Source of the DNA: Macrostomum lignano | Taxonomy: Eukaryota | Assembly: GCA_002269645.1 (NCBI GenBank) | Contig: NIVC01003532.1 | Coordinates: forward strand, 28,636 to 92,635 | DNA length: 64,000 nt | Direction: 5' to 3' | Part shown: one piece after another, positions 481-63,335 of the stretch | Layout: every line of letters starts with the position of its first letter | How positions within the stretch are numbered: position 1 is the stretch's first letter | Program-made: the position numbers and the translations under genes | Notes under the pieces: generated by a model | What the model was told of the DNA's origin: nothing | What the model saw: only the letters and a program-made list of their open reading frames with translations | Database searches by the model: none

Positions 481-2274
481 TCAGTGTAGCGGATGCTGCA
501 CTACGGGCTCTCGCATATTGAATGACACGCTTTCAAAGAACGCCTCCGGGTCCTGCGACTGCTTGCGCATGCGGCGGCTTTCGGTGAGCATGAAGTCGAG
601 GAACAACTCCGATGTGGCAAAGTCATCGCCTCGCTGTCTGAGATGCAGCTCTGTGAACAGTCTCACTTGCAGAGCGGAGAATCCGAGCTGAGTGAGCAGT
701 CTCACAACGGGCAGGTCGGCTCTCGCCTTGATGTCTCTGGCCTCGACTCTGAACTCGACTCCAGGTGTGACTGCGAGAGCCTCGTCTGCGCGACTGCTGC
801 GGACTGCGGACCCGTCGACAGTCGCAGCACCAGCTGATGCAGTTGAGTCCGTCTGTACCAATGCAGTGTGACGCTGAGCTGAGGCGCCACAAGTCGGGTG
901 CTGCACGGGAGGCGACAGTCGGTGCACTGTCTGTACAAAGTCGCTGCCTCGCTCCAACAACACGTGAGGACACCGAGGTGACCACCTGGCGTGCTCAACC
1001 CACACATCATCGTCGCAGCTCCACTCGCTCATGCAGAGTCCGCAGCTGAAGCAGCAGGTCGCTCTCTCGGCTTCCGAGTAGAAGAAGCCCGCCTTTGCAA
1101 GCAAGTACACTGGCTGCTGAACGAGAGCCGAGTGCAGAGACTGCGACCTCGCTTGGTAGGTCTCGAACTGTGCGCGTTTGGCAGTCACACTCGATGGATC
1201 ACTCTCGAGACTGTGTTGCAGAGCTGACAGGTTCGTGAGAGCTCTCTCGGAGCACGCAGATCTCGCTACGTCGCTCGACACTGGAAGCTGAGGACGCTTC
1301 ATCATGTCGAAAGCAACCAGCTTATCGTCCACATCGCGTTCTGCATTCGTTCCAAAAGTTGCGCGTGTCGCCAGCGCCCACTCGTTCAGTCCAGCGAACT
1401 CCATCGGTGGTAGCTCAGCGACCAGCTTTATGCTCCAGTCTCCGTTCACCATCACTGCTGCATCATCTGCAGTCTGATCACTGCACTGCACTGCTTCTAC
1501 CAGCTTTGCTGAACTCAAGACTCTTTCCGGCTCTCTGTGATCTCGAGGCACGTTGCCGACCTCGACGAACAACACGAACGGACAGGTGGAGAAGTGGCGT
1601 CTGTGAGCCTCTCGGACCTGCTCGCCCGCCTCCCAGTCCTTGAGCACACCCTTGCAGAATGCACACTTTACTCTGTCCGACTCCTGCAGGTAGAAGAATC
1701 CGTCAGCAGCCAGATCCGTCACTGACACCAGGTGAGCCGCTGTGAAGCTGGCATCTGGCAGGTGGAAAGACTGCCACCTGTTCTCCTCTCGTCTCATGTC
1801 CCACAGGTGTTGTGGAATCGAGGCCGGCATTCCACTCGTGTCCCATCGCTGATTGCGGAAGTCCAGAGTCTGCGGCACGGATGACGCTCTGCCACCAGGT
1901 GTGCTGTTGTTGTAGTACCGCAGCACCTTGCTCTTACCTGTCAGTTTTTTCTGCTGACTAATATTTTGCTCAAGATTTTGCCTAGTCGATCTTTGGATGA
2001 GTAGACGAAGTCTCGGAATTTCGACGAGGGCCACTGATATGAGACAATCCCTGAAGTCATTCGTCCAGCGAATTTCCTGAAAAATTAGTTGCAGCAGTTC
2101 CTTATGTCTCGTCTTTGAGACTATGATGAATCCAAATATTTCATTAGCGAAGTCCAATCCCTTTTGAGAGATAAGTTCTTTTGGAACTGTTTTGGATCGC
2201 AGCGATAAAATGTGTCGTTCTGTGGCTCGTATTTCAAATAGGTTGTATTTTGAACGGTTTGTTTTACTTTCCAT
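481..2274 (-). CDS. IAP copy 1: variable N-terminus + BIR1 + BIR2 + UBA-like, no RING
   Basis: ORF 481..2295, first ATG at 2274. Two BIRs with C-x2-C-x16-H-x6-C (CAFC...H...C; CFSC...H...C) and a UBA-like segment (PVVRLLTQLGF...GDDFATSELFLDFM). Leaves the shared cassette at EAFFES and stops after QHPLH; AATAAA follows the stop. Confidence 0.85.
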   Translation of the reverse strand: MESKTNRSKYNLFEIRATERHILSLRSKTVPKELISQKGLDFANEIFGFIIVSKTRHKELLQLIFQEIRWTNDFRDCLISVALVEIPRLRLLIQRSTRQNLEQNISQQKKLTGKSKVLRYYNNSTPGGRASSVPQTLDFRNQRWDTSGMPASIPQHLWDMRREENRWQSFHLPDASFTAAHLVSVTDLAADGFFYLQESDRVKCAFCKGVLKDWEAGEQVREAHRRHFSTCPFVLFVEVGNVPRDHREPERVLSSAKLVEAVQCSDQTADDAAVMVNGDWSIKLVAELPPMEFAGLNEWALATRATFGTNAERDVDDKLVAFDMMKRPQLPVSSDVARSACSERALTNLSALQHSLESDPSSVTAKRAQFETYQARSQSLHSALVQQPVYLLAKAGFFYSEAERATCCFSCGLCMSEWSCDDDVWVEHARWSPRCPHVLLERGSDFVQTVHRLSPPVQHPTCGASAQRHTALVQTDSTASAGAATVDGSAVRSSRADEALAVTPGVEFRVEARDIKARADLPVVRLLTQLGFSALQVRLFTELHLRQRGDDFATSELFLDFMLTESRRMRKQSQDPEAFFESVSFNMREPVVQHPLH

Positions 2275-4226
2275 TATTTTTTGTCGCTCGGTCAAGACAG
2301 GTGGAAGATAAAGTGTTCTCTAACTTCGAAAATTTTGGGACTATGATTGACTCACGGTTGGAAATCTACAATGAAATGTTTTAGTGCTTTTGCAAAGGAC
2401 TAAGCAATTCGAGTGGTATATAAATGATACATTTATGTATACTTAGTTATTTTGAGGTTTATTTTGCTAGATACTTTCCTGATATTTTGAACACGTTCAC
2501 GACAGTATGTGTACATGCAATTTAAAATTTTGTTTTTGGCAAAAGCAAAGCACAAAAAGGTTATAGCCGCAAAAGTCAAAACGTCTCGGTTCTTACCTGT
2601 ATATAGTGTGCTCAAGACAGTTCAAATTTTTAAAAAACATATTTTTTCGATGGATGAGGTGAGGTGCAGTATTAGGTTTAGTGTTATAGATAGTGTAATT
2701 TTTGTTTCCTTACTAATGAATTGTTTTGAAACTAAAAAACAGTGTTCTTAGTTCGATGCAGTTTAGAGTATTACTAGTAGATAAAATAGTTAGTTGACTT
2801 GGGGTGTGAGTGAATCTTCTTGTACAAGAACGGTTTTTATGAACAGGCTCAGTAGAGAAGCAACTACCCCAGCCAACTACACTTTATAATCAGTGTTCAC
2901 TGTTCTTAGCTCGCATTTGCGCACCAAAAGCTATATGCAAACTGTACACGCGTTGGAATGGCCGCGGTTTGTTCGTGGATTTTTCGCGGATTATTTTGGG
3001 ATTTCCCAATTTTTACTTCACTGGCTGCAGTGCTAGGGCGTTAATCTCTAATCTAACCATGTGTAAAAATAATTTTCCCATTCGCCTATAAATATGTGGT
3101 GTAGCTGAAGATGGCTTCTCCATGGCATTGCCACGGTTCAACCATAGCCAGTTCGTGCTATAAAAAGGACTTCTCCGGTAAGTTCTATCTAGATTACTGC
3201 AATTATACTCTCGTTTGCGGTACTAATCTGCTTAAGGGTGCAATTCACGCTACTGAGAAATTAAGGACCTCCACACCAGTTGCTCTGAGAACACTAGCTA
3301 GCTACGTGTAGATAGGACGCATTCCCACTTGCTTGTCATGCATTAGGAAAATGATTATCTCTGATAAAGAAGTACATAAAAAGTGTAAACTAATCTGTAA
3401 TATTATTCTCATTGAGAAAAAAACTCTTATTGAAATATTGCATATATTACATTCACATTAAAACTCGAACGCTTTCTAACAATTTTGCTTTACACAACTT
3501 ATATCGAGGATATATTATTGCCGTTGCTAAATTGCTCATTTGTCCATTGTTTTGATCGTCCTAAAAAGAAATTCAGAAGTCGTAATTATTATAGTTAGAG
3601 ACCAGTCTCATTGCCTGCTGATTTCTAGAAGATTTCTTTGTCTTGTTTTGTTTCAGCTAGCCTAGAATTAAAGAGAAATTTCCGCGGAAATTCCACGTTA
3701 TTGCCGGGAGTCGAAAATAGCACTGACGGTATTAGTCTCCAAAACAGCTGATAAAAATAGAGTACTGGCAGCGGTGTTTTGCATGGACTAAATACGAGCT
3801 ATAGACACACAAGCAAGTGTGTACACACCACTTTCGATGACGAAAAATGTGTTTGACTGGTTAAAAAAGCTGGAAAATTTATCTCATAGATTAGATTAGA
3901 TTCTTTTAAGGCCACATCCTAGATGTATGATGTATAAAATTACAAAGTTATAACTGTTATATTAGAAAAATAAATGTGAAACTACATCAAACTAGGCATT
4001 AAAAAAAGAAAATACTTGCCAGACCACATCTTAGCTTTCTATGAAAAACTAAGGATCTCTCGAAAAGCTTTAACAATAGAGTATTAAGCCAAGACCCTTC
4101 TATAGGCCACTAAAATCAGTCATTCAAAAACTATACAGTACTAACAGTACCCAACCTTATTCGCATAAAACGAACTATCATTTGCAGAAATTTAGCCTGC
4201 AGACCGAACAAAGAAGAAGCATCTAC

Positions 4227-6272
4227 ATGTCGACAGAAGTACAAAACCCAAAAAGTTCAAACTTAATTAAAAAAGGTACGTCAAAAACAAAAGAGTGCAT
4301 AAAAACGGCATGTTCAAAAATTAATAGCTATGTGGATGAAATTAGAAACGTCTTCAAACTTACCGTCCATCTTGTTAAAGAATTCGAGAGCGTTCTCAAA
4401 AAAAGAGCATATTATCTCTCAAAAAACATTTCAAATATTTTCTATGAAATTACACATTCTGCACTGAATGCCACAGATAATATGGACCATATAATAAATT
4501 GCATTGAAGAAGAACAACAGATTGCAGACGAAAAGATCCAAAGTCTTTTGTCCGTAGTTTTATCTGAAATGCAAAAACAGCGACTGCTTGTCATGAAGTC
4601 TTCAAACCAAATATCTGACCAACGAATAGTCGAGCACAAAATACAGACAGGCAAGAGCAAGGTACTGCGGTACTACAACAACAGCACACCTGGTGGCAGA
4701 GCGTCCTCCGTGCCGCAGACTCTGGACTTCCGCAATCAGCGATGGGACACGAGTGGAATGCCGGCCTCGATTCCACAACACCTTTGGGACATGAGACGAG
4801 AGGAGAACAGGTGGCAGTCCTTTCACCTGTCAGATGCCAGCTTCACAGCGGCTCACCTGGTGTCAGTGACGGATCTGGCTGCTGACGGATTCTTCTACCT
4901 GCAGGAGTCGGACAGAGTAAAGTGTGCATTCTGCAAGGGTGTGCTCAAGGACTGGGAGGCGGGCGAGCAGGTCCGAGAGGCTCACAGACGCCACTTCTCC
5001 ACCTGTCCGTTCGTTCTGTTCGTCGAGGTCGGCAACGTGCCTCGAGATCACAGAGAGCCGGAAGGAGCCTCGAGGTCTGCAAAGTTGGTAGAGGCAGTGC
5101 AGTGCAGTGATCAGACTGCAGATGATGCAGCAGTGATGGTGAACGGAGACTGGAGCATGAAGCTGGTCGCTGAGCTACCACCGATGGAGTTCGCTGGACT
5201 GAATGAGTGGGCGCTGGCGACACGCGCAACTATTGGAACGAATGCAGAACGCGGTGTGGAGGACGAGCTGGTCGCAGTCGACATGATGAAGCGTCCTCAG
5301 CTTCCAGTGTCGAGCGAAGTAGCGAGATCTGCGTGCTCCGAGAGAGCTCTCACGAACCTGTCCGCTCTGCAGCACAGTCTCGAGAGTGATCCATCGAGTG
5401 TGACTGCCAAACACACACAGTTCGAGACCTACCAAGCGAGGTCGCAGTCTCTGCACTCGGCTCTCGTTCAGCAGCCAGTGTACTTGCTTGCAAAGGCGGG
5501 CTTCTTCTACTCGGATGCCGAGAGAGCGACCTGCTGCTTCAGCTGCGGACTTTGCATGAGCGAGTGGAGCTGCGACGATGATGTGTGGGTTGAGCACGCC
5601 AGGTGGTCACCTCGGTGTCCTCACGTGTTGTTGGAGCGAGGTAGCGACTTTGTGCAGACAGTGCACCGACTGTCGCCTCCCGTGCAGCACCCGACTTGTG
5701 GCGCCTCAGCTCAGCGTCACACTGCATTGGTACAGACGGACTCAACTGCATCAGCTGGTGCTGCGACTGTCGACGGGTCCGCAGTCCGCAGCAGTCGCGC
5801 AGACGAGGCTCTCGCAGTCACACCTGGAGTCGAGTTCAGAGTCGAGGCCAGAGACATCAAGGCGAGAGCCGACCTGCCCGTTGTGAGACTGCTCACTCAG
5901 CTCGGATTCTCCGCTCTGCAAGTGAGACTGTTCACAGAGCTGCATCTCAGACAGCGAGGCGATGACTTTGCCACATCGGAGTTGTTCCTCGACTTCATGC
6001 TCACCGAAAGCCGCCGCATGCGCAAGCAGTCGCAGGACCCGGAGGCGTTCTTCGAGAGCAGGATGTCTCAGATTCGGGAGTCTCTGAACCAACAGCCGAG
6101 ACCCCGAGACACAACCGACTGGAAGACGTGCAAGGTGTGCATGGACAAGGAGGTGAACATCATGCTGCTGGACTGTGGTCACGTGGCCTGCTGCTCAGTG
6201 TGCGCCAAGTCGCTGAAGACGTGTCCCATCTGCAGAGCCTTCATTCGTGGGGTGGTATTTGTGCAAATGTGA
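4227..6272 (+). CDS. IAP copy 2: coiled-coil-like N-terminus + BIR-BIR-UBA-RING
   Basis: ORF 4182..6272, first ATG at 4227. Two BIR zinc motifs and C-terminal RING CKVCMDKEVNIMLLDCGHVACCSVCAKSLKTCPICR. Single uninterrupted ORF. Confidence 0.92.
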   Translation: MSTEVQNPKSSNLIKKGTSKTKECIKTACSKINSYVDEIRNVFKLTVHLVKEFESVLKKRAYYLSKNISNIFYEITHSALNATDNMDHIINCIEEEQQIADEKIQSLLSVVLSEMQKQRLLVMKSSNQISDQRIVEHKIQTGKSKVLRYYNNSTPGGRASSVPQTLDFRNQRWDTSGMPASIPQHLWDMRREENRWQSFHLSDASFTAAHLVSVTDLAADGFFYLQESDRVKCAFCKGVLKDWEAGEQVREAHRRHFSTCPFVLFVEVGNVPRDHREPEGASRSAKLVEAVQCSDQTADDAAVMVNGDWSMKLVAELPPMEFAGLNEWALATRATIGTNAERGVEDELVAVDMMKRPQLPVSSEVARSACSERALTNLSALQHSLESDPSSVTAKHTQFETYQARSQSLHSALVQQPVYLLAKAGFFYSDAERATCCFSCGLCMSEWSCDDDVWVEHARWSPRCPHVLLERGSDFVQTVHRLSPPVQHPTCGASAQRHTALVQTDSTASAGAATVDGSAVRSSRADEALAVTPGVEFRVEARDIKARADLPVVRLLTQLGFSALQVRLFTELHLRQRGDDFATSELFLDFMLTESRRMRKQSQDPEAFFESRMSQIRESLNQQPRPRDTTDWKTCKVCMDKEVNIMLLDCGHVACCSVCAKSLKTCPICRAFIRGVVFVQM

Positions 6273-11118: not shown

Positions 11119-12179
11119 TGGGAGAGAGAAACTACTGCCTCTGTGTTAGACCCCGTTCCACTTCTCTATCCCAAGCATTCTGATTGTAGCTCGTAAATGC
11201 ATCAATTGTTTTGCATAGAATACAGCATGCAGAAGAAGTAAGATCCTATCTCATTCTTGCTGCTGCAGCTTTTAATTTAAATATGAGCTCACGATCAGCC
11301 TCAGTCTCTCCTCATTCCTCAGTCAGCTTCCAATCCTGCGCCAAGTAACCCTACAAAAGTTGTTGGAAAATATCACAATGTATTCTGGCACTGTACGCGA
11401 TAGGAAAAAAGAAAAACAATTAAGAACTCCAGAGTATGATCAGATTTTGGTTCAAATGGCATCCTTGAGACGGCAGAACCTACATGTAACACACTATATT
11501 CACCCAATTTTCAGATAGCAGCTACTTCTACCGACTCTCTAGCGGCTCTCGTCAGCTTCGGCTGCTCCCAAGGCGTTGATCTTGAACCTGTAGGAACTCG
11601 ATGTGTGCGCAGAATTATTTCGATCAACCAACTGGGTCTTGTTCAAAGTGGAGTTGTCGAGTTACAGATACGAATTTTGCCTTCCTACGGGTATTGGCAT
11701 TCTCAGCCTCAGAGGTAATTCCACTAAGCATAGCAATGCTTAAAATATCAAAAAGAATTTTTACAATAGTCTTAAGAGTTTACTGTGAAAAAACCAACAA
11801 TGATAATCTAAATTTCCATCAATTTAAACCGAAGTTAATTACTAAAATCAATACCGAAAATTTTTAGTTCCATGTTAAAGTGGCAAACCCACGGAAAGTC
11901 CAAGGAAATGCCTTCTTATCATTTGGCCAAATTTACCGACCATTAAAAATAGACTGTACGCTCGTACAGCCTGTACAACTGAATTCTAAAAATAGCTCCT
12001 CCGTATTCCCCACAGTACACACCGTGTTCTAAAAGCCCGAGACAAGAGAGTTGAGAGTTTAGTAATGGTGCAGTGCAGTGCATACAGTTCGTAAAATTGG
12101 ACATCGTTGGCATGGATAATTTTTTCTCCTTGCTTTTTGGGCGCCCCAAAGGTGGTATAGATTGCTAGTCCACCTTTAA

Positions 12180-12435: not shown

Positions 12436-12885
12436 TAAACTACAACCCCTATAAGCTTTAGAGCTTTTAGTTTTTGACAGTTGTTCCTAATAACATTTCA
12501 TTATTTAAAGATCAAATTAAAACTGTTTTAGAGAGAAACGACTTTCAACAAGAGGCTACTGAAGCATCGAGATAACAAAATAATAAATTGATAAAAACAA
12601 CTGCTACACGACTTTTTTCTCCGAGGATTGGTTTGAATCATGAATCATCTCAACTTTCGAAGCGTGCTTCAGTGGCAATTGGACTCATCTTATTCAACTC
12701 AAACGGTCCAAATTCAAAATCAATCCCAGCGACAAGCCGTAGACATCAGCGATGTTGAGCTCACTAGCAATGCGGTCATGGAAACAGCAGATTTTAATAG
12801 AGCTCAATAAACAGACAATACAATATCAAACCCAAGTGTTAAAAATTCATTAGCTGTTGCACTAAAAGCCATAGCTGACACAGAA

Positions 12886-14598
12886 ATGGCCAAGCAGCGA
12901 ATGCTCATAGCAGCTCAGCATCGAGTTTCAACATACTTTGGTACACCTGACACGCGACAATTGGTACAAACAGGTAAGAGCAAGGTGCTGCGGTACTACA
13001 AAAACAGCACACCTGGTGGAAGAGCGTCCTCCGTGCCGCAGACTCTGGACTTCCGCAATCAGCGATGGGACACGAGTGGAATGCCCGCCTCGATTCCACA
13101 ACACCTGTGGGACATGAGACGAGAGGAGAACAGGTGGCAGTCCTTCCACCTGCCAGATGCCAGCTTCACAGCGGCTCACCTGGTGTCCGTGACGGATCTG
13201 GCTGCTGACGGATTCTTCTACCTGCAGGAGTCGGACAGAGTAAAGTGTGCATTCTGCAAGGGTGTGCTCAAGGACTGGGAGGCGGGCGAGCAGGTCCGAG
13301 AGGCTCACAGACGCCACTTCTCCACCTGTCCGTTCGTGCTGTTCGTCGAGGTCGGCAACGTGCCTCGAGACCACAGAGAGCCGGAAGGAGTCTCGAGGTC
13401 AGCAAAGCTGGTAGAGGCAGTGCAATGCTGTGATCAGACTGCAGATGATGATGCAGCAGTGATGGTGAACGGAGACTGGAGCATGAATCTGGTCGCTGAG
13501 CTACCACCGATGGAGTTCGCTGGACTGAACGAGTGGGCGCTGGCGACACGCGCAACTATTGGAACGAATGCAGAACGCGTTGTGGACGATAAGCTGGTTG
13601 CTTTCGACATGATGAAGGGTCCTCAGCTTCCAGTGTCGAGTGAGGTAGCGAGATCTGCGTGCTCCGAGAGAGCTCTCACGAACCTGTCCGCTCTGCAGCA
13701 CAGTGTCGAGAGTGATCCATCGAGTGTGACTGCCAAACACGCACAGTTCGAGACCTACCAAGCGAGGTCGCAGTCTCTGCACTCGGCTCTCGTTCAGCAG
13801 CCAGTGTACTTGCTTGCAAAGGCGGGCTTCTTCTACTCGGAAGCCGAGAGAGCGACCTGCTGCTTCAGCTGCGGACTCTGCATGAGCGAGTGGAGCTGCG
13901 ACGATGATGTGTGGGTTGAGCACGCCAGGTGGTCACCTCGGTGTCCTCACGTGTTGTTGGAGCGAGGTAGCGACTTTGTACAGGCGGTGCATCGACTGTC
14001 GCCTCCCGTGCAGCACCCGACTTGTGGCGCCTCTGCTCAGCGTCACACTGCATTGGTACAGACGGACTCAACTGCATCAGCAGGTGCTGCGACTGTCGAC
14101 GGGTCCGCAGTCCGCAGCAGTCGCGCAGACGAGGCTCTCGCAGTCACTCCTGGAGTCGAGTTTAGAGTCGAGGCCAGAGACATCAAGGCGAGAGCCGACC
14201 TGCCCGTTGTGAGACTGCTCACTCAACTCGGATTCTCCGCCCTGCAAGTGAGACTGTTCACAGAGCTGCATCTCAGACAGCGAGGCGATGACTTTGCCAC
14301 ATCGGAGCTGTTCCTCGACTTCATGCTCACCGAGAGCCGCCGCATGCGCAAGCAGTCGCAGGACCCGGAGGCGTTCTTCGAGAGCAGGATGTCTCAGATT
14401 CGGGAGTCTCTGAACCAACAGCCGAGACACCGAGACACAACCGACTGGAAGACGTGCAAGGTGTGCATGGACAAGGAGGTGAACATCATGCTGCTGGACT
14501 GTGGTCACGTGGCCTGCTGCTCAGTGTGCGCCAAGTCGCTGAAGACCTGCCCCATCTGCAGGGCCTTCATCCGTGGCTCAGTGTTTATTAAGATGTAA
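12886..14598 (+). CDS. IAP copy 3: BIR-BIR-UBA-RING; upstream in-frame extension (ATG 12640) broken by TAA 12808-12810
   Basis: Intact 570-aa ORF with both BIRs and RING. The upstream frame translates MNHLNFRSVLQWQLDS...DISDVELTSNAV...*...SLAVALKAIADTEM, homologous to the copy 4 N-terminus. Confidence 0.88.
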   Translation: MAKQRMLIAAQHRVSTYFGTPDTRQLVQTGKSKVLRYYKNSTPGGRASSVPQTLDFRNQRWDTSGMPASIPQHLWDMRREENRWQSFHLPDASFTAAHLVSVTDLAADGFFYLQESDRVKCAFCKGVLKDWEAGEQVREAHRRHFSTCPFVLFVEVGNVPRDHREPEGVSRSAKLVEAVQCCDQTADDDAAVMVNGDWSMNLVAELPPMEFAGLNEWALATRATIGTNAERVVDDKLVAFDMMKGPQLPVSSEVARSACSERALTNLSALQHSVESDPSSVTAKHAQFETYQARSQSLHSALVQQPVYLLAKAGFFYSEAERATCCFSCGLCMSEWSCDDDVWVEHARWSPRCPHVLLERGSDFVQAVHRLSPPVQHPTCGASAQRHTALVQTDSTASAGAATVDGSAVRSSRADEALAVTPGVEFRVEARDIKARADLPVVRLLTQLGFSALQVRLFTELHLRQRGDDFATSELFLDFMLTESRRMRKQSQDPEAFFESRMSQIRESLNQQPRHRDTTDWKTCKVCMDKEVNIMLLDCGHVACCSVCAKSLKTCPICRAFIRGSVFIKM

Positions 14599-31540: not shown

Positions 31541-31704
31541 TGCACTAGATAATAAAATGATTCTTGCACTATCTTAGAAGCGGATAATTGCGCTGAAAAA
31601 AAAGAGATTATTGCGCTAGCTGAGACATGGATTATTGCACAACCTGAGAAAGCGATTATTTCATTAGCGGAGGAAATATTTGCACTAGCTACTTGCTGTC
31701 TAAT

Positions 31705-47107: not shown

Positions 47108-47670
47108 TTGCAGGCTGGTTATTTCTTGGAAGAACTGAAAAATGGTTTCTCGTCTGCTCTCTGATGCGGCGTTTCTTTGATTTGAAGTCAGATTTTGAAG
47201 CCAGCGCTCGGTGTTCAGAATGGAATTCTGTGATCTCCATTGAGCCAGTGTAGTTGATGGCCTTCGAAAGTGTTCTGCTGCATGAGAGGTTTATTTTGTG
47301 GAAATAATTTAATTTAAAAGCTGATCGACAGTGGCAAAAGTTTTTTAAACGTTTCAATAAAGTAAAAATTGAATGAAATTACCTGCGTTTCGGCGTCGAT
47401 GCCTTTGCTGTCCGACGTTAGCAATTATAACAAGTGACAGACTGTTGCTTTAAATATCGATATTAAACCGCTTTTGGCTTGCTTATTTCGACTTTCTGTG
47501 ATATGAATATTGTCGCCTGTCCATACCCCGGTATACTCGTATGTACGTGTATATATACTATTTTAAGCTGGAGCTTAAAACGTACCCCGCAATAATGCAC
47601 TAGCTAAAAATAGCTATTACAAACTATCTAAATATACTAAATCTTATATTCTATTTATGGAACGAACCAG

Positions 47671-48921
47671 CAGTGTTGGGCAAGTTACTCAAAAAAAGTA
47701 ACTTGCGTTACTGTAACTTAAGTTACCAATTTTTAAAAAGTAACTTACGTTAGCCTAGTAACTTTAGACAAAAACCCCGGTAACTTTTAAGTTACTGTCC
47801 GTTACTCACTTCCGTTACCCATGTTATTAACAAAATTTTCTGCTTTTTTCACATTGCACATTTTTTTCACACTGTTTTTACCGAAATTTGCCATTGGGCA
47901 TTGGGATTAACCGATTAACAGACAGAGACAGCAATTGGCGACACGATGTGAGGCAAGTAGAAGGACCGATGGGCAATGGCAATCAATAATTAAAATTATA
48001 AATGATAAAATAAACGAATATCAATAATTCAATAAAGTAAAATAAATAACTGTATAAAATGGTGTAGTGTACTGCAGTGCCAGCGGAGGGACTTGTGGAG
48101 GCTACAGATGAATTTCTTTCTTTGGTTGTTTGTTTGAATCAAACTTGAAAATTTTTAGTAACTTGAAAATGGAAACGTATGAAACATTCGCCGACACCCA
48201 CTCAGACACTTCTACAGACACTTCAGTTTCTGTCATACGAATCGTAGGAACAAGCATTAAATTTGTTTATTCCTTACAAACTACCAGTAAACTGCTTTAT
48301 TTTAAGCTTTTTTTGCTTTATTTTATTAAATCTGAATCATGAAATTTGTTATTCTGCATAGATTCTCTTCACGTGAAGAAGAATGTTAAATTTGTCCAGG
48401 ACACTTCCTAATTCATATTTAATAAAATAAAGCAAAAAAAGCCCAAAATAAAGCAGTTTACTGGTAGTTTGTAAGGAATAAACAAATTTAATGCTTGTTC
48501 CTACGATTCGTACGACAGAAACTAAAGTGTCTGTAGAAGCGTCTGAACAAGTGTCGGCGAATGTTTCATACGTAAATGAAAGGCAAAAATATTTTACTGA
48601 AATTATAACAAAGCAAAACATGTTTCAAGTATTTCTTCATTAATTAAAGCGCAATACCAAATGATACTATTCACTTAATTTTGAATTTAGGAATGAAAAA
48701 TGCAAAAACATGTGACAACCGGCGTAATAGCTAAGCATTTCAGTTTTAAATTTAAATATTGCGATTGTTGCAAAGTAACTGTAACGGACTTCTGAAATTT
48801 GAGTAACTTACCGTTACTTCGTTACTAAAATAAAAAAGTAACTTGCGTAAGGAACGCTTTACGAAAAAGTAACTTGCGTTACCATTTGCAAGTTACTCGG
48901 TAACGGAAGTGCCCAACACTG
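47671..48921. mobile_element. Non-autonomous hAT transposon
   Basis: TIR CAGTGTTGGGCA...TGCCCAACACTG; perfect 8-bp TSD CGAACCAG (47663-47670, 48922-48929); subterminal GTAAC/GTTAC repeats. Confidence 0.92.
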
Positions 48922-51869: not shown

Positions 51870-52322
51870 ACGCTGATCTGTCCGAATCCAATGCTGTTCT
51901 GTCCGAATCCTATGCAGATCTGTCCGAATCCAATGCAGATCTGTCCGAATCCAATGCAGATCTGTCCGAATCCAATGCAGATCTGTCCGAATCCAATGCA
52001 GATCTGTCCGAATCCAATGCAGATCTGGCCGAATCCAATGTCCGAATCCAGTGCAGATCTGTCCGAATCCAATGTCCGAATCCAGTGCAGATCTGTCCGA
52101 ATCCAATGCAGATCTGTCCGAATCCAATGCAGATCTGTCCGAATCCAATGCAGATCTGTCCGAATCCAATGCAGATCTGTCCGAATCCAATGCAGATCTG
52201 TCCGAATCCAATGCAGATCTGTCCGAATCCAATGCAGATCTGTCCGAATCCAATGCAGATCTGGCCGAATCCAATGCAGATCTGTCCGAATCCAATGCAG
52301 ATCTGTCCGAATCCAATGCAGA
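51870..52322. repeat. 21-bp minisatellite (TCCGAATCCAATGCAGATCTG)
   Basis: Direct reading; the same unit occurs inverted at 58244-58575. Confidence 0.92.
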
Positions 52323-52590
52323 TCGGCGGCAATCGAGTAACCGAGTGCCAGCTCGAAGTCTTCCTGCGCCCCTGCATCGTCAACGGAGTCCGCTGCCCGC
52401 CGGATGGCTCGATGAGCTTTGAAAATATAGCGAATTACGAGCTACATGGAGAGCACCAAGATGTTCTCCAGAGCACTCGCTGGCGAGCTGCCCAGGGAAT
52501 GTGACTGCGAAGACACCTGCGAGACTTGCAACCGTCGCTGCATGTACGCCATGATGAAGGTGCTCGTTCTCGAGTACAACGTCCCGGTCA
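52322..52590 (+). pseudogene. Frameshifted paralogue of exon 2 of the secreted Cys-rich gene at 57800-58648
   Basis: GGNRVTECQLEVFLRPCIVNGVRCPPDGSM, frameshift near 52440, then MESTKM...GELPRECDCEDTCETCNRRCMYAMMKVLVLEYNVPV. No signal exon seen. Confidence 0.75.
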
Positions 52591-53659
52591 GAATTCATGT
52601 TTACGAGTCTTAAATGTGTTCACAAATAACTCACAGCTTGTTAGTTCATCGATCATTGAGTTCAACCGCTGAAGCGTTTTGTGGTACTTGCTTGGTAGTT
52701 GCCATAAAGAGAGGATCGAGAAAAGCGGGAAAACGCGGTACGCCGTCTAAAAAAGAAATACCTTCATTGCCTAAAATAGCCTATGTGAAAGCAGTACTCC
52801 GAGAAATAATCATGTGACAAGCGTCAAGCCAAGATTATTTATAGCTTTACAGCCCTAGCTTTAATTCAGGTTTTTATAGTTCATGCAAACAGCGAGTGTC
52901 GATCTTCCAGCGCACACTGTTTATCTTGTGCAGAGCTCCCCCGGCTTTTCCATGACTAGTGTACTGTACTGCATTGTACTCGCGTGATAAAAATAACTGG
53001 CGGCTTTCCCATGAGTAAGTGTACGTTAATACGGCAGTGTAATTCACGAGATAAAAATAGCGCTGAAACTCAGGAAATTTCTTGAAGGTTCCATCAGATT
53101 GCTCCGATTTAAACATATATAAATAACGAGCAAAAACTGGACTGTATTAAAGAATTATAATTCTAGCAGAATTACTAGATTTACAATCCGCTGGATTTAA
53201 CGGAAAGTCGCCAACTCTATTTTATCTCATCGACTAAATCGTTACCTTGTAGTGGTAAGTGCTTAAAGCGTGTCTTATTCTTTGCTAAGATCATATTTAT
53301 CCGCTGTGAGGTCCCTAGATAGGCCACTCATTCAATGCTTTAGATGCCATAAACTCTGATGTGAGCTGGATTTATGGTCGAGACTAACTGAAATTTGTTA
53401 TTTTTTCAGTTTTAGAGCCGCGGAATGTGTCCAGAACCGTTTGAAGGACCACAGCGGTTAAGCCAAGTAATTTTTTGACTAAGCATTGTGAACCATACTG
53501 TTTTTAAGCTATACTTGGAACTGCATAAATTAGAGTAAAAATTTATTTTTACCGGCTGGCATTTATTGAGCCACTACTTTCCAAAACGTGCAGTTTTACA
53601 GCGTCGTAACATCATACCACTGAAATTTCAAAACGAAAACCCAAATTGTTAGTACACTT

Positions 53660-54015
53660 CATATACCCAAATTTACACATACCCGAAATTTCACATACCC
53701 AAATTTTCACATACCCAAATTTCACATACCCAAATTTTCACATACCCAAATTTTCACATACCCAAATTTTCACATACCCAAATTTTCACATACCCAAATT
53801 TTCACATACCCAAATTTTCACATACCCAAATTTTCACATACCCAAATTTTCACATACCCAAATTTTCACATACCCAAATTTTCACATACCCAAATTTTCA
53901 CATACCCAAATTTTCACATACCCAAATTTTCACATACCCAAATTTTCACATACCCAAATTTTCACATACCCAAATTTTCACATACCCAAATTTTCACATA
54001 CCCGAAATTTCACAT
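53660..54015. repeat. 16-bp minisatellite (CACATACCCAAATTTT), about 21 units
   Basis: Direct reading. Confidence 0.92.
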
Positions 54016-55007
54016 AGCAAAAGTTCACATACTTAGAAGTTTACGTCGAATTGCACAATGTCGAAATAACCTTTAGAGATAAGACTATAAACTAGAATTT
54101 TAAAATAGGTAATTTCCCTAATTTCACACTTTGCTCTTTCCGTAATTTCTATACTCACTTATCTGGATACGAAGGTCCTGTGTGATAACCTGATATTGTT
54201 AGGATAGTCTCCAAATCTGCTGGAAATGTTATTTTTCAGCTGATATTATGGGAATTATAAAACTTCTGCCCAACCTTAATTAAATATTGAATACTAGGTC
54301 CGGGAGCTCAGCTAGGATGTGCAATTTTCTGTTTAAGAAATGAAACAAAATGGATGACTGCTGGTAATAAGTGTCCTAAGTGTAAGTGTGGTCTTCTAAG
54401 TGTAAATTCGACGTTGTGAAATTTTAGAGTTGTGAAACCAACTGTCGCTGTATTATAACAAAACGTAAAAATCAAAGATGGAGTAATTTTTAGAAAGCCA
54501 ATTTCCAGGAGAAATACACTGCGGAGATTGGAAAAATTATTTTTTCCATAAAAAAATCAATAAATGCATTTGATATGGGTCAGTGAAGATTACCCCTTCT
54601 TCAATTGCACAGCAACAATATAAAACACAATATTCACCTGTTTCCATGCTAAATTAAAGGAATGGTAATCTCAACTGGCCTGAATCAAATGCAAATATTG
54701 ATATTGTAACGAAAAAATGATTTTTCGTGGAAATCGGCCTCCTAAAAACCTACCAGATTTATGAGTTTTACGTCCTGGTATACTACAGTGTTCGTTTTGT
54801 AAAACTTCGGAGTTGAAAGTAAAGTTCACATTTCGCTGATATAAGATACTTTCCTTAGATTTATAACAGTCTAGCACTCTCTAATGGCAAATATTTAGGC
54901 CTCTAGTTATCTTTTGCCATAAAGAACGCCCATTACGAGCGTAAATAAGGATCTGTAGATAAACAAAGTTACATGAATTTCTAATCTACTAATGTTTTAG
55001 CCAAAAA

Positions 55008-57047
55008 ATGCACTCGACAAGACAACAAAGTTACTTCCCTCAAGCATCCGCCGGTGTGGCAAAGAAGTTTCGAGCGGCCAACGGAACAGGCAGCTCTGTG
55101 GAAAATATTATGCATTTAATTTCCAGTCTCACACAACCTGCAAGCGGCTGCAACTTCTATGTAACTTTAGACGACAAAACACTTCAGCGGTTGAACTCAA
55201 TGGTCGATGAGGTCACAAGCTGCACTCGAGACCGACTTCCGCTAGACAACATGGAACTAATTCAGGAACACCAAAAAATGAGCTTCACAGGTGAAATGTT
55301 TCAAAAGTTGCTTCAACATGCAGCCACAGAAATTTCAAAGTTCCTGATGATGAATGTTAGACAGAATACTCAGGCTTCAGAAATGAATTTACGGGCAGCG
55401 CAACAAGGAAATAAGGCTCAAACAGGTAAGAGCAAGGTGCTGCGGTACTACAACAACAGCACACCTGGTGGCAGAGCGTCATCCGTGCCGCAGACTCTGG
55501 ACTTCCGCAATCAGCGATGGGACACGAGTGGAATGCCGGCCTCGATTCCACAACACCTGTGGGACATGAGACGAGAGGAGAACAGGTGGCAGTCCTTCCA
55601 CCTGCCGGATGCCAGCTTCACAGCGGCTCACCTGGTGTCAGTGACGGATCTGGCTGCTGACGGATTCTTCTACCTGCAGGAGTCGGACAGAGTAAAGTGT
55701 GCATTCTGCAAGGGTGTGCTCAAGGACTGGGAGGCGGGCGAGCAGGTCCGAGAGGCTCACAGACGCCACTTCTCCACCTGTCCGTTCGTGCTGTTCGTCG
55801 AGGTCGGCAACGTGCCTCGAGACCACAGAGAGCCGGAAGGAGTCTCGAGGTCAGCAAAGCTGGTAGAGGCAGTGCAGTGCAGTGATCAGACTGCAGATGA
55901 TGCAGCAGTGATGGTGAACGGAGACTGGAGCATGAATCTGGTCGCTGAGCTACCACCGATGGAGTTCGCTGGACTGAACGAGTGGGCGCTGGCGACACGC
56001 GCAACTTTTGGAACGAATGCAGAACGCGTTGTGGACAATAAGCTGGTCGCTTTCGACATGATGAAGCGTCCTCAGCTTCCAGTGTCGAGCGAAGTAGCGA
56101 GATCTGCGTGCTCCGAGAGAGCTCTCACGAACCTGTCCGCTCTGCAGCACAGTGTCGAGAGTGATCCATCGAGTGTGACTGCCAAACACACACAGTTCGA
56201 GACCTACCAAGCGAGGTCGCAGTCTCTGCACTCGGCTCTCGTTCAGCAGCCAGTGTACTTGCTTGCAAAGGCGGGCTTCTTCTACTCGGAAGCCGAGAGA
56301 GCGACCTGCTGCTTCAGCTGCGGACTTTGCATGAGCGAGTGGAGCTGCGACGATGATGTGTGGGTTGAGCACGCCAGGTGGTCACCTCGGTGTCCTCACG
56401 TGTTGTTGGAGCGAGGTAGCGACTTTGTACAGGCGGTGCATCGACTGTCGCCTCCCGTGCAGCACCCGACTTGTGGCGCCTCAGCTCAGCGTCACACTGC
56501 ATTGGTACAGACGGACTCAACTGCATCAGCTGGTGTTGCGACTGTCGACGGGTCCGCAGTCCACAGCAGTCGCGCAGACGAGGCTCTCGCAGTCACTCCT
56601 GGAGTCGAGTTCAGAGTCGAGGCCAGAGACATCAAGGCGAGAGCCGACCTGCCCGTTGTGAGACTGCTCACTCAGCTCGGATTCTCCGCTCTGCAAGTGA
56701 GACTGTTCACAGAGCTGCATCTCAGACAGCGAGGCGATGACTTTGCCACATCGGAGCTGTTCCTCGACTTCATGCTCACCGAGAGCCGCCGCATGCGCAA
56801 GCAGTCGCAGGACCCGGAGACGTTCTTCGAGAGCAGGATGTCTCAGATTCGAGAGTCTCTGAACCATCAGCCGAGACCCCGAGACACAACCGACTGGAAG
56901 ACGTGCAAGGTGTGCATGGACAAGGAGGTGAACATCATACTGCTGGACTGTGGTCACGTGGCCTGCTGCTCAGTGTGCGCCAAGTCGCTGAAGACGTGCC
57001 CCATCTGCAGAGCCTTCATTCGGGGTGTACTTTTTCTGCGGGACTGA
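55008..57047 (+). CDS. IAP copy 6: variable N-terminus + BIR-BIR-UBA-RING
   Basis: 679-aa uninterrupted ORF from ATG; BIR and RING motifs intact. Confidence 0.93.
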   Translation: MHSTRQQSYFPQASAGVAKKFRAANGTGSSVENIMHLISSLTQPASGCNFYVTLDDKTLQRLNSMVDEVTSCTRDRLPLDNMELIQEHQKMSFTGEMFQKLLQHAATEISKFLMMNVRQNTQASEMNLRAAQQGNKAQTGKSKVLRYYNNSTPGGRASSVPQTLDFRNQRWDTSGMPASIPQHLWDMRREENRWQSFHLPDASFTAAHLVSVTDLAADGFFYLQESDRVKCAFCKGVLKDWEAGEQVREAHRRHFSTCPFVLFVEVGNVPRDHREPEGVSRSAKLVEAVQCSDQTADDAAVMVNGDWSMNLVAELPPMEFAGLNEWALATRATFGTNAERVVDNKLVAFDMMKRPQLPVSSEVARSACSERALTNLSALQHSVESDPSSVTAKHTQFETYQARSQSLHSALVQQPVYLLAKAGFFYSEAERATCCFSCGLCMSEWSCDDDVWVEHARWSPRCPHVLLERGSDFVQAVHRLSPPVQHPTCGASAQRHTALVQTDSTASAGVATVDGSAVHSSRADEALAVTPGVEFRVEARDIKARADLPVVRLLTQLGFSALQVRLFTELHLRQRGDDFATSELFLDFMLTESRRMRKQSQDPETFFESRMSQIRESLNHQPRPRDTTDWKTCKVCMDKEVNIILLDCGHVACCSVCAKSLKTCPICRAFIRGVLFLRD

Positions 57048-57799: not shown

Positions 57800-58648
57800 T
57801 CAGCCTTGAAAACCGAAGAATCGCTTCGACTGAGGAGCACCGACGGGAATGTTGTACTCGAGGATGAGCACCTTCATCATGGCGTACATGCAGCGCCTGT
57901 TGCACCTCTCGCTGCTATCGTCGCAGTCGCATTCGCTGGGCAACTCGCCAGCCAGCATCCTGGTGGCCATCTTGGTGTTCTCCATGTTCTCCACGATCTT
58001 GTCGTAGCTCAGAGAGCCATCCGGCGGGCAGCGGACTCCGTTGACGATGCAGGGGCGCAGGAAGGCTTCGAGCTGGCCCTCGGTGAGCCGGTTGCGGCCG
58101 CCCGGCTGAGCAGACTGGGAAAGAGCGAGTTAAGATTGAGTATGCACAGAATTATTAGCTGCAATTATGAGTATTGAGAGCGTTCATTTACATGTAAGAG
58201 TCACGTCTGTATTGGATGTGGACGGGCATCTGGACGGGAATCAGCACTGGATTCGGACAGATCTGCATTGGATTCGGACAGATCTGCACTGGATTCGGAA
58301 AGATTTGCACTGGATTCGGACAGATCTGCACTGGATTCGGACAGATCTGCATTGGATTCGGGCATATCTGCATTGGATTCGGACATTCTGGAAGATCTGC
58401 ATTGGATTCGGGCATATCTGCATTGGATTCGGACATTCTGGAAGATCTGCATTGGATTCGGGCATATCTGCATTGGATTCGGACATTCTGGAAGATCTGC
58501 ATTGGATTCGGACAGATCTGCACTGGATTCGGACAGATCTGCATTGGATTCGGACAGATCTGCACTGGATTCGGAGATTCACAATAAATAGAGGTCTTAC
58601 CACAGTGGCCACGATGGCAAAAAGAGCAGCACAGACGATGAGCTTCAT
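57800..58648 (-). CDS. Two-exon secreted 120-aa Cys-rich precursor (exons 58648-58601 and 58114-57800)
   Basis: Exon 1 MKLIVCAALFAIVATV, donor GTG|GTAAGA, acceptor CTCTTTCCCAG|TCT, in frame. Spliced product has a signal peptide ending VSA|Q, six Cys and C-terminal SKRFFGFQG*. Confidence 0.8.
58244..58575. repeat. 21-bp minisatellite inside the intron of the secreted-protein gene
   Basis: GGATTCGGACAGATCTGCA(C/T)T units between the donor and acceptor. Confidence 0.9.
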
Positions 58649-59479: not shown

Positions 59480-59921
<442 letters not shown>

Positions 59922-61712: not shown

Positions 61713-62969
61713 GCATAAAAAAGAAAAGTGCTGCGTAAGTGATAGAATGATTAAACCAGCAAACTTGTTTACCTCAAGGGCCAGGTAAAAAACTTTGCTA
61801 ATGCTGCGGCCCGGATGGGAGAGGACAGAAGAGAGGAAAGGCGAGAGAGATAAGAGAAGAGAGGAATGAAGGGAGAGGAGAAGAGAAGATGAGAGAGGTG
61901 GACCTTGAGGTAGTCGCCGTTTCTTACGACTCGATTAAAGAAACATCTAATTCTGCTTCAATAAGGATTCCCCATCATTTGCCCTGCTCTCAGTTGAGTC
62001 TGTAAACTGATAGCCGCCATGAAGCATGCAGAGCATGCAAGCAGACAGGTAAAGAGAATGCAGTGAGACAAAAGGAAGCATCAGACACATTCGTCCCAAA
62101 TCCCGGTATCTGAAACCGGTAAAACGGATATTTCAGGAAAAGCAATACCGTCCTCAAGCATTGTGAATTTAAATCTGAATGCACTGAGGAATTATTCAAG
62201 GTGTAAAAATGAGCATTACTTTGCTGCACCAAAAGACGTCCCAAGCATCTCCGCAGAGCGGCGGCCTGGCTTTCTCCATAGGTCGTCAAGGCCCTACAGC
62301 TCCTTCTATCATTTTTCTAGTCTTCCAACTAGCCAGACAGTCAAAGAGACGCCCGTTGGATTCAATTCCCTTTCCGCTGTGCACAGCCGGCACGAATTGT
62401 CCTTCTGCTTTCTTAGGCGAGCTCTCACCTTTGATCTCAATGTCTATCCAGCTGGCCGTGAGCTGGGGGGCCTCAAGGAGGCCTGGAAGAAGCTTCATGG
62501 CTTTCCATCAGCGACTTAAATAATCCTGATTAGGGTTAAGTGTTAGTACTTTCGTTTCCCTCTTTGGAACAATAGCCATTACGCCTCCTCCTTGCACTTT
62601 GATACTATGACATCATTGACTATGATGTCATCGAAGCTTCAGCCGTGGCATGCGCGACATGTCCGTCCGATAAAGAACTTCTGATTTATTTTCGTCATAC
62701 ATCCGAGTGATGCACTGGCTCACTCCGTCCGGCCAAGCGATAAAGTTGATGAAAAAATTTTTCTTTCGCTTTCGCTTTCCGCATTTTGAGCAGGTTTTGC
62801 TGTCCGGGGAATTCTCCGTCAGGATACGATTCAGGAAGTGTTTCTCGCCAGTAACACTCACCAGTTACCACTTATAGTTGCATCCAAATGGCCGAATGTC
62901 TTTAGCCGCAGTTCCCTCATGCTGAACAAATTTCGATATCTGTTCAAAGTTCCTGGCGAGGCCGACAAT

Positions 62970-63335
62970 ATTCTCCGCCCTGCAAGTGAGACTGTTCACA
63001 GAGCTGCATCTCAGACAGCGAGGCGACGACTTTTCCACATCGGAGCTCTTCCTCGACTTCATGCTCACCGAGAGCGCTGCATGCGCAAGCAGTCGCAGGA
63101 CCCGGAGGCGTTCTTCGAGAGCAGGATGTCTCAGATTCGAGAGTCTCTGAACCAACAGCCGAGACACCGAGACACAACCGACTGGAAGACGTGCAAGGTG
63201 TGCATGGACAAGGAGGTGAACATCATGCTGCTGGACTGTGGTCACGTGGCCTGCTGCTCAGTGTGCGCCAAGTCGCTGAAGACGTGCCCCATCTGCAGAG
63301 CATTCATTCGGGGTGTACTTTTTCTGCGGGACTGA
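62970..63335 (+). pseudogene. IAP copy 7: 5'-truncated, frameshifted UBA-end + RING fragment
   Basis: Near-identical to the cassette from ATTCTCCGCCCTGCAAG onward; 1-bp deletion near 63078 (GAGAGCGCTGC versus GAGAGCCGCCGC); tail and 3' flank like copies 5 and 6. Confidence 0.85.

Follow-up and report, generated by a model that had tools for sequence, protein, structure and literature searches.

The window analysed is a 64,000-nt stretch of Macrostomum lignano contig NIVC01003532.1 (positions 28,636–92,635, forward strand). Between positions 481 and 63335 of the window lie six long intronless IAP ORFs (c1–c6) and a RING-only fragment (c7) (Table 1). An earlier note, made from the letters alone, had described six such ORFs with a common core of ~540 aa, and this is confirmed: the common core is 1.62 kb long (542 aa in c6), with 96.5–97.8 % DNA identity among copies. 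Only c2, c4 and c6 are fully intact. The other three of the six are damaged: c1 is RING-less, c3 carries a nonsense codon and c5 lacks an ATG throughout the 116 upstream codons that are open. In c1, homology to the other copies stops after ...DPEAFFES and is followed by an unrelated 16-codon tail to the stop at 481. The longest c3 ORF begins only at 12886 because the in-frame TAA breaks the N-terminus; the same codon is TCA (Ser) in the c3 duplicate at locus L004. The c5 product from MPASIP (45302–46828) is among the M. lignano proteins annotated at NCBI.

Table 1. Features of the IAP array (window positions)
Feature	Position	Strand	Remarks
c1 ORF	481–2295	−	ORF list
c1 core, BIR1-BIR2-mid region	529–1944	−	Without RING
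c1 N-terminal extension	1945–2274	−	110 codons from ATG at 2274; 125 codons open
c2 ORF	4182–6272	+	ORF list
c2 N-terminal extension	4227–4643	+	139 codons from ATG; 188 codons open
c2 core, linker, BIR1, BIR2, mid region and RING	4644–6272	+	Intact
c3 ORF	12886–14598	+	ORF list
c3 N-terminal extension	12640–12966	+	c4-like along full length; in-frame TAA 12808–12810
c3 core	12967–14598	+	Intact
c4 ORF	32645–34630	+	ORF list
c4 N-terminal extension	32645–32989	+	115 codons; proximal ~125 nt still c3-like
c4 core	32990–34630	+	Intact; 12-nt insertion in common with c5
c5 ORF	45302–47107	−	ORF list
c5 core	45302–46942	−	Intact
c5 N-terminal open frame	46943–47290	−	116 codons, no ATG
c6 ORF	55008–57047	+	ORF list
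c6 N-terminal extension	55008–55418	+	137 codons
c6 core	55419–57047	+	Intact; GC 0.58 vs 0.39 on both sides
c6 BIR1	~55560–55793	+	
c6 BIR2	~56190–56447	+	
c6 RING	~56898–57026	+	
c7, 3′ core fragment (pre-RING region and RING)	62970–63335	+	3′ tail of c5/c6 type

BIR domains (Pfam PF00653, E=1e-26 to 1e-29) are found in two stretches in each of c1–c6, with PDB matches to BIR domains of cIAP1, XIAP, NAIP and DIAP1. A C3HC4 RING (PF13920, E ~3e-13) is present in c2–c6 and in c7; Pfam finds none in c1, which the earlier note had already called RING-less. The best PDB match is cIAP1 3t6p (E=1.7e-26), to whose RING the array RING aligns. Judged by sequence, with at least one BIR and a C-terminal C3HC4 RING, the products are predicted to be IAPs and, more narrowly, RING-type IAPs of the DIAP1/XIAP/cIAP kind. 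The UBA previously placed in the cassette was not recovered. Pfam gives no UBA match even at E≤10, the region searched alone against PDB sequences matches no UBA, its positional alignment to the cIAP1 UBA scores 0.8 bits, and the three helices given by AF2 have a pLDDT of 38, too low to use. No CARD or death-fold was matched in Pfam at E≤0.01, and the proteins do not qualify as cIAP-type on that feature. As in the DIAP1/XIAP/cIAP RING IAPs there are two BIRs, of which the first best matches XIAP BIR2-type and the second cIAP1/XIAP BIR3-type chains, and the C-terminal C3HC4 RING is followed by a short tail that retains an aromatic residue. Unlike them, the array genes are intronless, without a CARD, and carry a 110–140-aa N-terminal extension and a ~38-aa linker ahead of BIR1.

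Both edges of the core are sharp. At the 5′ junction, ungapped identity rises from 0.29 in the 60 nt upstream to 0.96 in the 60 nt downstream; this step falls within one codon and at the same position in all six copies. The identical junction is also present in a distant paralogue, Mlig006323, the core of which is 87–88 % identical, and the same architecture and junction were found on five separate contigs. At the 3′ edge, homology between copies stops within about 20–30 nt of the stop codon. GC content is 0.34–0.44 in the N-terminal regions vs 0.58 in the core, and GC3 is 0.29–0.44 vs 0.66–0.68, with steps at both edges. However, the raised core GC3 is not specific to gene conversion, since the FkbM-like neighbour (the only neighbour scored) has a GC3 of 0.80; such values may just be usual for coding regions of the M. 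lignano genome. Among window copies, core dS is 0.05–0.10 and dN/dS 0.13–0.30.

These edges also bear on the origin of the array. The GC-rich intronless cassette might be a retrocopy of an IAP mRNA, a tentative reading that is compatible with later conversion; it is similarly doubtful, although conceivable, that AT-rich local sequence beside the cassette became the N-terminal extension, which would make the junction an old insertion edge. The GC steps and the shared junction in the distant paralogue fit such an origin, as does the continuous ORF, whereas the C-type BIR is intron-split in other bilaterians (PMC13159474). Against it, no common 3′ UTR, poly(A) remnant or target-site duplication was found among the copies beyond the stop codon, about which homology ends.

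The N-terminal regions were proposed to be AT-rich, open and probably coding, and all three points hold. The in-frame open stretch is 116–188 codons in c1, c2, c4, c5 and c6; stop-free dinucleotide shuffles numbered 14 (c1), 0 (c2), 3 (c4), 64 (c5) and 10 (c6) per 5000, giving a joint chance probability for the five frames of ~1e-13 or less. The other five frames contain 2–16 stops in each region. PAA94447.1, a duplicate elsewhere in the assembly, is annotated as a complete CDS with an intact c3-type N-terminus and core, starting at the N-terminal ATG, and GenBank CDS annotation for M. lignano is transcript-based (PMC5730564). Because the frames are open beyond chance, protein homology outlasts DNA homology and PAA94447.1 exists, the N-termini are very probably coding. 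That the proteins instead begin at MPASIP within the cassette, with everything upstream being 5′ UTR, is unlikely on the same evidence, although the N-terminal GC3 resembles that of non-coding DNA rather than that of the neighbouring gene, c3 has its stop codon, and c5, without an upstream ATG, is annotated from MPASIP both in the window and in its duplicate. Within window positions 35302–56828 and the duplicate loci L004 and L005, c5 is the only copy annotated in GenBank; c6, c2′, c4′ and c6′ are unannotated. A further CDS, PAA61298.1, which also speaks for coding N-termini, is 5′-partial and starts 2 nt downstream of a TTTCAG acceptor.

The N-termini had also been called helix-prone, which AF2 bears out for c2, where two long helices are predicted ahead of a disordered linker. 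The N-terminus and linker have no Pfam match, and a profile of the two found no relatives outside its own family among 1.84 billion representative proteins. Five distinct N-terminal types had been counted. At the DNA level this stands, as similarity is absent between most N-termini; as proteins they are homologous and colinear. Smith–Waterman z scores against shuffles are 5.7 for c1–c2 (a weak homology), 7.9 for c2–c4, 3.0 for c2–c6 and 33 for c3–c4, the last in agreement with the kinship of copies 3 and 4 already noticed. In a leave-one-out HMM test each of the six matches the profile of the other five (p≤0.003; p=0.003 for c5). Since all six are homologous, colinear and in register with the junction, at which the alignments end, they appear from their sequences to descend from one ancestral N-terminal region.

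This homology tells against the swappable module of the earlier note, in which unrelated N-termini would have been joined to a constant IAP cassette by exon or module shuffling, to give a diversified sensor/adaptor family under diversifying selection. Several observations are in keeping with such shuffling: most N-termini lack DNA similarity although the cores are ~97 % identical and share one junction, c5 and c6 have the same 3′ tail type yet very different N-termini, and the N-terminal profile lacks outside relatives. Shuffling is nevertheless very improbable. The N-termini did not originate independently, no N-terminal module detached from a core was found in the window or at locus L001, and c1, c3 and c5 are defective. 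In the distal N-terminus of c3/c4, pN is 0.44 vs a saturated pS of 0.79, and there is thus no sign of diversifying selection in that region.

Divergence within this one gene pair is strongly uneven: dS is 0.08 in the core and 0.23 in the proximal 40 codons of the N-terminus, with saturation in the distal part. Same-type duplicates on contigs NIVC01000010.1 and NIVC01000199.1 show the reverse. The N-termini mismatch at 0.72 % (c2), 1.22 % (c3) and 0 % (c6) of positions, and the cores at 2.43, 2.37 and 0.31 %, respectively (pooled Fisher p=2e-6). The c4 pair differs by 3.3 % in the N-terminus, all within the stretch shared with c3, and core differences over all same-type pairs are 0.3–3.2 %. Non-coding flanks, like the N-termini, are less changed than the cores. 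As same-type duplicates differ less there than in the cores, the N-termini are not fast-evolving, and the term hypervariable does not apply to them. If the duplications were recent, with core dS giving their true age and the N-termini hypermutated or positively selected without any conversion, the uniformly similar core would be accounted for, and all seven differences between duplicates in the c2 and c3 N-termini do change the protein; this all-replacement pattern is as compatible with relaxed constraint as with function. Recent duplication is, however, barely tenable. It would need the rate to change more than 20-fold from one nucleotide to the next, which no neutral process gives, and it is contradicted by the saturated pS beside the low core dS and by the slower change of N-termini and flanks between duplicates. 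In Mlig006323, g1 and g2 likewise differ by 1.3 % in the N-terminus vs 2.9 % in the core.

The cores are related to one another in a mosaic way that does not follow the relationships of the N-termini and flanks. The core of c2, c3 or c4, and of each of their duplicates, is nearest to a copy of another type, and in these pairs roughly half of the core differences, or more, have both alleles in other paralogues. The 31 informative core sites give 16 different split patterns, and of their 465 pairings 255 are incompatible under the four-gamete test; the observed run clustering was reached in 0 of 2000 permutations of a GENECONV-like test. In c4′ the conversion goes beyond the core into the proximal N-terminus, over just the stretch in which c3 and c4 remain alike.

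The assembly was made with Canu (errorRate 0.04) and then polished by Pilon with short reads, both genomic and RNA-seq (PMC5730564), a procedure that can make a chimeric consensus in a multicopy, 97 %-identical core. Part of the four-gamete, run-clustering and core-over-flank signals could therefore be artefact; the c6/c6′ pair, for example, differs at 5/1604 positions in the core vs 0/941 in the flanks, as consensus noise would also give. That read correction and polishing account for both the near-identity and the mosaicism is quite unlikely. The gross contrast between a ~97 %-identical core and an unalignable N-terminus cannot be produced in this way: polishing does not turn unalignable sequence into 1.6 kb of 97 % identity that shows purifying selection at the codon level (dN/dS 0.13–0.30). 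Additionally, in-frame indels still tell copies apart (3 nt in c3; 12 nt in c4/c5), and the architecture and junction recur on five contigs and in the 12 %-diverged Mlig006323, which stayed distinct.

The preferred reading, with a probability of roughly 0.78, is an old IAP array in which the core has been homogenised by regional gene conversion and the N-terminal extension has diverged outside the tract. It would have begun as an old tandem array of a lineage-specific IAP gene in M. lignano, all copies deriving from a single ancestral gene in which the extension was already present and was followed by the disordered linker and a DIAP1/XIAP-like BIR-BIR-RING core. Repeated ectopic conversion among paralogues would then have held the 1.62-kb core at ~97 % identity, while the N-terminal region and both flanks diverged at the DNA level to saturation, under weak purifying selection. 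The boundary would be so sharp because heterology of the diverged flanks confined later tracts to the same edges. Conversion would also have kept the cores of the damaged copies c1, c3 and c5 intact-looking. Two results expected of concerted evolution were obtained: identity in the tract far exceeds that outside it, synonymous sites included (dS 0.05–0.10 vs pS 0.79), and the tract is mosaic with a genealogy discordant with its flanks, to which Pilon/Canu artefact may contribute. The earlier description of the array is thus partly confirmed and its interpretation partly supported; the homogenised core stands. Regional conversion in an old tandem array gives just such a pattern, and the likeness to variable-plus-constant immune receptors drawn in the earlier note is neither favoured nor opposed by these results.

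The closest analogue would be the fish protocadherin clusters, where regional gene conversion acts on the clustered variable exons of fugu and zebrafish (Yu et al. 2007, PMC1852091; Noonan et al. 2004, as cited in PMC1852091). In both cases the 3′ part of tandem paralogues is strongly homogenised, the 5′ part is divergent and sets the paralogues apart, and GC3 is raised in the tract (54–69 % vs 38–45 % in fugu, PMC1852091; 66–68 % vs 29–44 % in the array). The protocadherins are of another gene family and phylum, however, and are variable exons spliced to common constant exons, whereas the array consists of separate genes in both orientations. In the array it is the whole functional-domain core that is homogenised and a domain-less extension that is left out, and beyond the tract the sequences have diverged so much further that their DNA cannot be aligned. 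Tandem intronless duplicates, RING-less derivatives and novel architectures also occur in IAP expansions of bivalves and other invertebrates (PMC7831173, PMC8917759, PMC13159474); gene conversion is unmentioned in the 2026 IAP survey (PMC13159474).

Each paralogue may yield a protein whose common BIR/RING core binds IBM-bearing partners and ubiquitinates, and the divergent helical N-terminus could provide paralogue-specific oligomerisation, partners or localisation. According to the same 2026 survey, Platyhelminthes have almost no RING-containing IAPs, and its main text does not mention Macrostomum (PMC13159474); the array shows several RING IAPs in a free-living flatworm. The array adds a clear new case of an evolutionary process already known, and is not a receptor system of swappable modules.

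The IAP array of the window is a lineage-specific, N-terminally extended family under region-restricted concerted evolution, and half of its members are degenerate. Six intronless IAP ORFs (c1–c6) and a RING-only fragment (c7) share all or part of a 1.62-kb core, upstream of which each of the six carries its own N-terminus. The junction between the two is the 5′ edge of the core.

IAP ORFs of the window, with the nucleotide at which the core begins
Feature	Position	Strand	Source	Core start
c1 IAP ORF	481–2295	-	ORF listing of window	1944
c2 IAP ORF	4182–6272	+	ORF listing of window	4644
c3 IAP ORF	12886–14598	+	ORF listing of window	12967
c4 IAP ORF	32645–34630	+	ORF listing of window	32990
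c5 IAP ORF	45302–47107	-	ORF listing of window	46942
c6 IAP ORF	55008–57047	+	ORF listing of window	55419
c7 RING-only ORF	62838–63335	+	ORF listing of window	

Two BIR domains are recognized by Pfam in each of c1–c6 and a C3HC4 RING in c2–c7, c7 being a 366-nt 3′ fragment of the core. No RING is found by Pfam in c1, because homology of this copy to the others stops after ...DPEAFFES. The best PDB matches of the first BIR are XIAP-BIR2-type chains and those of the second are cIAP1/XIAP-BIR3-type chains, while the RING aligns to cIAP1 (top overall match 3t6p, E=1.7e-26). The earlier note had described a BIR-BIR-UBA-RING cassette; its BIRs and RING stand, but for a UBA between the second BIR and the RING, Pfam gives no match even at E≤10 and the PDB none when the segment is searched by itself. 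Its one indication is that the segment aligns by position with the cIAP1 UBA at 0.8 bits, in a region whose AF2 model is unusable (pLDDT 38). The core is therefore treated as BIR, BIR, possible UBA and RING. As a domain core it is that of an ordinary DIAP1/XIAP-like RING IAP.

Past the RING, the RING-bearing copies end in five or six codons of one of three tail types, all with Phe at one fixed place: VVFVQM in c2 (6250–6272), SVFIKM and SLFFRE in c3 (14576–14598) and c4 (34608–34630), and VLFLRD in c5 (45302–45324), c6 (57025–57047) and c7 (63313–63335). The grouping by tail disagrees with the grouping by N-terminal type. Both c1 and c7 are followed, after a few hundred bases, by a 117-nt segment (137–252 and 63668–63783, 87 % identity), which suggests that c1 derives from a c7-like 3′ context through deletion of the RING.

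By self-BLAST of the window, the core is 96.5–97.8 % identical between copies. It starts at the equivalent nucleotide in every copy, and its homology stops ~20–30 nt from the stop codon. With the junction as anchor, ungapped identity averages 0.29 over the 60 nt upstream versus 0.96 over the 60 nt downstream. GC content steps at both edges of the core (0.39 to 0.58 to 0.39); GC3 is 0.66–0.68 in the core versus 0.29–0.44 in the N-termini, a signal that is ambiguous because a neighbouring gene has a GC3 of 0.80. The core of Mlig006323, a more distant IAP paralogue, is 87–88 % identical to those of the window (dS 0.24–0.28), with the junction and GC step as in the window copies.

In c1, c3, c4 and c6 the core begins with CAG/GTAAGAG, a near-perfect splice-donor consensus; in c2, c5 and Mlig006323 the bases at its start are CAGGCAAG, with GGCAAG and not GTAAGAG. 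A real donor at the junction was rejected in view of GGCAAG in these three genes and of the frame running through. The donor-like site is probably out of use, as the reading frame continues across it.

Upstream of the junction, 125, 188, 52, 116, 116 and 142 codons are open in c1 to c6, respectively. Dinucleotide shuffles of each stretch served as the null, an empirical null from the window having been discarded as useless because minisatellites make long ORFs; stop-free shuffles numbered 14, 0, 312, 3, 64 and 10 per 5000 in the same order. The remaining five frames of these stretches contain 2–16 stops. ATG-initiated extensions measure 110 codons in c1, 139 in c2, 115 in c4 and 137 in c6; the open stretch upstream of c5 has no ATG, and c3 has a full c4-like N-terminus interrupted by a TAA at 12808–12810. 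Same-type duplicates of five copies are found elsewhere in the assembly (c2′ and c3′ on contig NIVC01000010.1, locus L004; c4′, c5′ and c6′ on NIVC01000199.1, locus L005). At the position of the TAA, c3′ reads TCA (Ser), a single-base nonsense difference.

GenBank annotation of the assembly, Mlig_3_7, was derived from TransDecoder ORFs of a genome-guided transcriptome (PMC5730564). In this annotation c3′ is a complete CDS of 651 aa (PAA94447.1) in which an intact c3-type N-terminus is joined to the core. A second M. lignano entry, PAA61298.1, is a 5′-partial CDS that includes the N-terminal region and starts 2 nt after a TTTCAG acceptor, a position consistent with a trans-splice site. The two annotations give indirect but real support for N-terminus and core on one mRNA. 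The open-frame shuffles, the stops in other frames and the transcript-based PAA94447.1 thus uphold the earlier proposal that the N-termini are probably coding. In exact protein look-ups the full-length window products were unmatched; the c5 product starting at MPASIP, a start motif inside the core, is an NCBI protein, and c5 and c5′ are both annotated from MPASIP. The locus of that protein, L003 on contig NIVC01003532.1 of Mlig_3_7, matches window 35302–56828 at 100 % identity, which assigns the window to M. lignano. No annotated gene was found for c6, c2′, c4′ or c6′ in GenBank (window 35302–56828, L004 and L005), and no promoter or acceptor motif common to the copies is evident upstream of the ATGs. 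The c5′ copy equals c5 apart from one missing nucleotide shortly ahead of the RING (L005 ~11350–11410), a deletion that frameshifts its protein (PAA88220.1, 469 aa) so that the RING is lost.

Swappable N-terminal modules had been proposed. Smith–Waterman scores against shuffles give z values of 33 for c3–c4, 7.9 for c2–c4, 5.7 for c1–c2, 4.2 for c2–c3, 3.0 for c2–c6 and 2.8 for c1–c6, and the pairwise alignments are colinear and terminate at the junction. All six N-termini have the motif E-[IVL]-[TF]-[SHG] at a distance of 62–76 residues from the junction. With leave-one-out HMMs, no N-terminus is equalled or beaten by more than 3 of its 1000 shuffles (3 for c5, none for c6). No detached N-terminal module was found elsewhere in the window by tblastn. 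Judged by these alignments, the N-termini are mutually homologous and not independent modules.

In a search of 1.84 billion representative proteins, a profile of N-terminus and linker hit PAA61298.1 and no relative outside the family, and no Pfam match above threshold was obtained for the N-termini. PAA61298.1 was the single match. AF2, run on the N-terminal alignment, models the c2 N-terminus as a pair of long helices (residues 8–81 and 85–141, pLDDT ~70–84) with a disordered linker after them; Foldseek found no PDB match to this model. As a working guess, the extension may serve paralogue-specific oligomerization or partner binding via the predicted helices.

Between c3 and c4, the distal N-terminus has a pS of 0.79 (saturated) and a pN of 0.44, and dS falls from 0.23 in the proximal 40 N-terminal codons to 0.078 in the core. 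Over all pairs, core dS is 0.05–0.10 and dN/dS 0.13–0.30, with variable residues at 1 of 80 positions in BIR1 and 22 of 130 in the inter-BIR linker. Recent duplication followed by fast N-terminal evolution is untenable as an explanation, because synonymous divergence steps more than 20-fold at one nucleotide. The core is also mosaic: its 31 informative sites show 16 split patterns, all four gametes occur at 255 of 465 site pairs, and concordant runs are clustered to a degree reached in none of 2000 permutations.

An independent test comes from the duplicate arrays, c2′ and c3′ in L004 and c6′, c5′ and c4′ in L005, whose order and relative orientation match the window. Mismatch in the N-terminus and core, respectively, is 0.72 and 2.43 % for the c2 pair, 1.22 and 2.37 % for c3, 3.3 and 3.16 % for c4, 0 and 0 % for c5, and 0 and 0.31 % for c6; c3 flanks differ by just 0–0.8 %. 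With c2, c3 and c6 pooled, cores exceed N-termini in differences at Fisher p=2e-6, the flanks of c3 and c6 being counted with the N-termini; this excess, like the fine-scale mosaic, may be partly artefact because polishing of a multicopy core can yield a chimeric consensus. Mlig_3_7 was assembled with Canu at errorRate 0.04 and Pilon-polished with short genomic and RNA-seq reads (PMC5730564). The gross pattern of a homogenized core beside divergent N-termini cannot be produced by assembly artefact; the copies retain distinct in-frame indels, and the architecture is present on five contigs.

For c2, c3, c4 and their duplicates, the nearest core is a copy of another type, not of their own. Both alleles occur in other paralogues at 19 of 39 core differences in the c2 pair, 26 of 39 in the c3 pair and 27 of 51 in the c4 pair. 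The N-terminal differences of c4′ are confined to the proximal part still common to c3 and c4, where the c3 type is matched. From these same-type comparisons it follows that the N-termini are not fast-evolving and that the cores exchange sequence. The observation behind the earlier note is real and its interpretation half right: coding N-termini and a homogenized core hold up, whereas a reading as swappable, hypervariable modules of an immune-receptor-like kind is not supported.

Several other features lie between the IAP genes. Minisatellites fill the intergenic DNA (17033–18407, 29734–31552, 36083–37506, 43766–44285, 51875–52324, 53658–54032 and 58240–58580), for example 34 nt x40, 24 nt x76 and 45 nt x32, with spurious long ORFs in several frames. 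A 662-aa ORF (40929–42917, minus strand) weakly matches FkbM methyltransferase in its C-terminal part (PF05050, E=0.0026, under the curated cut-off); its middle (41717–42688) consists of 12 tandem copies, 99 % identical, of an 81-nt/27-aa unit, its non-repeat GC3 is 0.80, and the GenBank record has no annotated gene there. Upstream of c5, a 195-nt non-coding element (47671–47861) is rich in short palindromes (GTAACTTAAGTTAC-like) and recurs with 92 % identity at 1583–1775 of L001, within the SelK gene range upstream of the Mlig006323 IAP. This element is probably a MITE-like repeat. No Rfam match was found in the window, and no Pfam match in ten other window ORFs.

The process seen in the IAP array matches that in fish protocadherin clusters, where regional gene conversion leaves the 3′ part >99 % identical between paralogues and the 5′ part different, with GC3 of 54–69 % in the common and 38–45 % in the divergent part (PMC1852091). 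The divergent N-termini of the IAPs would sit outside the conversion-exchanged core. It seems unlikely that selection, and not heterology alone, keeps the boundary, with divergent helical N-termini providing specificity to a common, conversion-uniform caspase-binding/E3 core. If it did, this would be an IAP family of variable-plus-constant design, and the paralogues would be functionally distinct apoptosis regulators (e.g. tissue-, stem-cell- or stress-specific) in a highly regenerative animal.

Gene conversion in IAPs is not described in the literature searched, including a 2026 metazoan survey in which RING IAPs are nearly absent from Platyhelminthes and Macrostomum is unmentioned in the main text (PMC13159474). 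Against that near-absence, M. lignano has at least two distinct BIR-BIR-RING IAP gene groups over five contigs (the window and L001–L005), so RING-type IAPs are present and expanded in a free-living flatworm. As an example of domain-restricted concerted evolution the array is unusually clean, with a one-codon-wide boundary between essentially unalignable DNA and ~97 % identity; as a practical warning, trees of the conserved core of such families misdate duplications. A lineage-specific N-terminal extension is now defined, and M. lignano is open to RNAi and transgenesis for testing its role.
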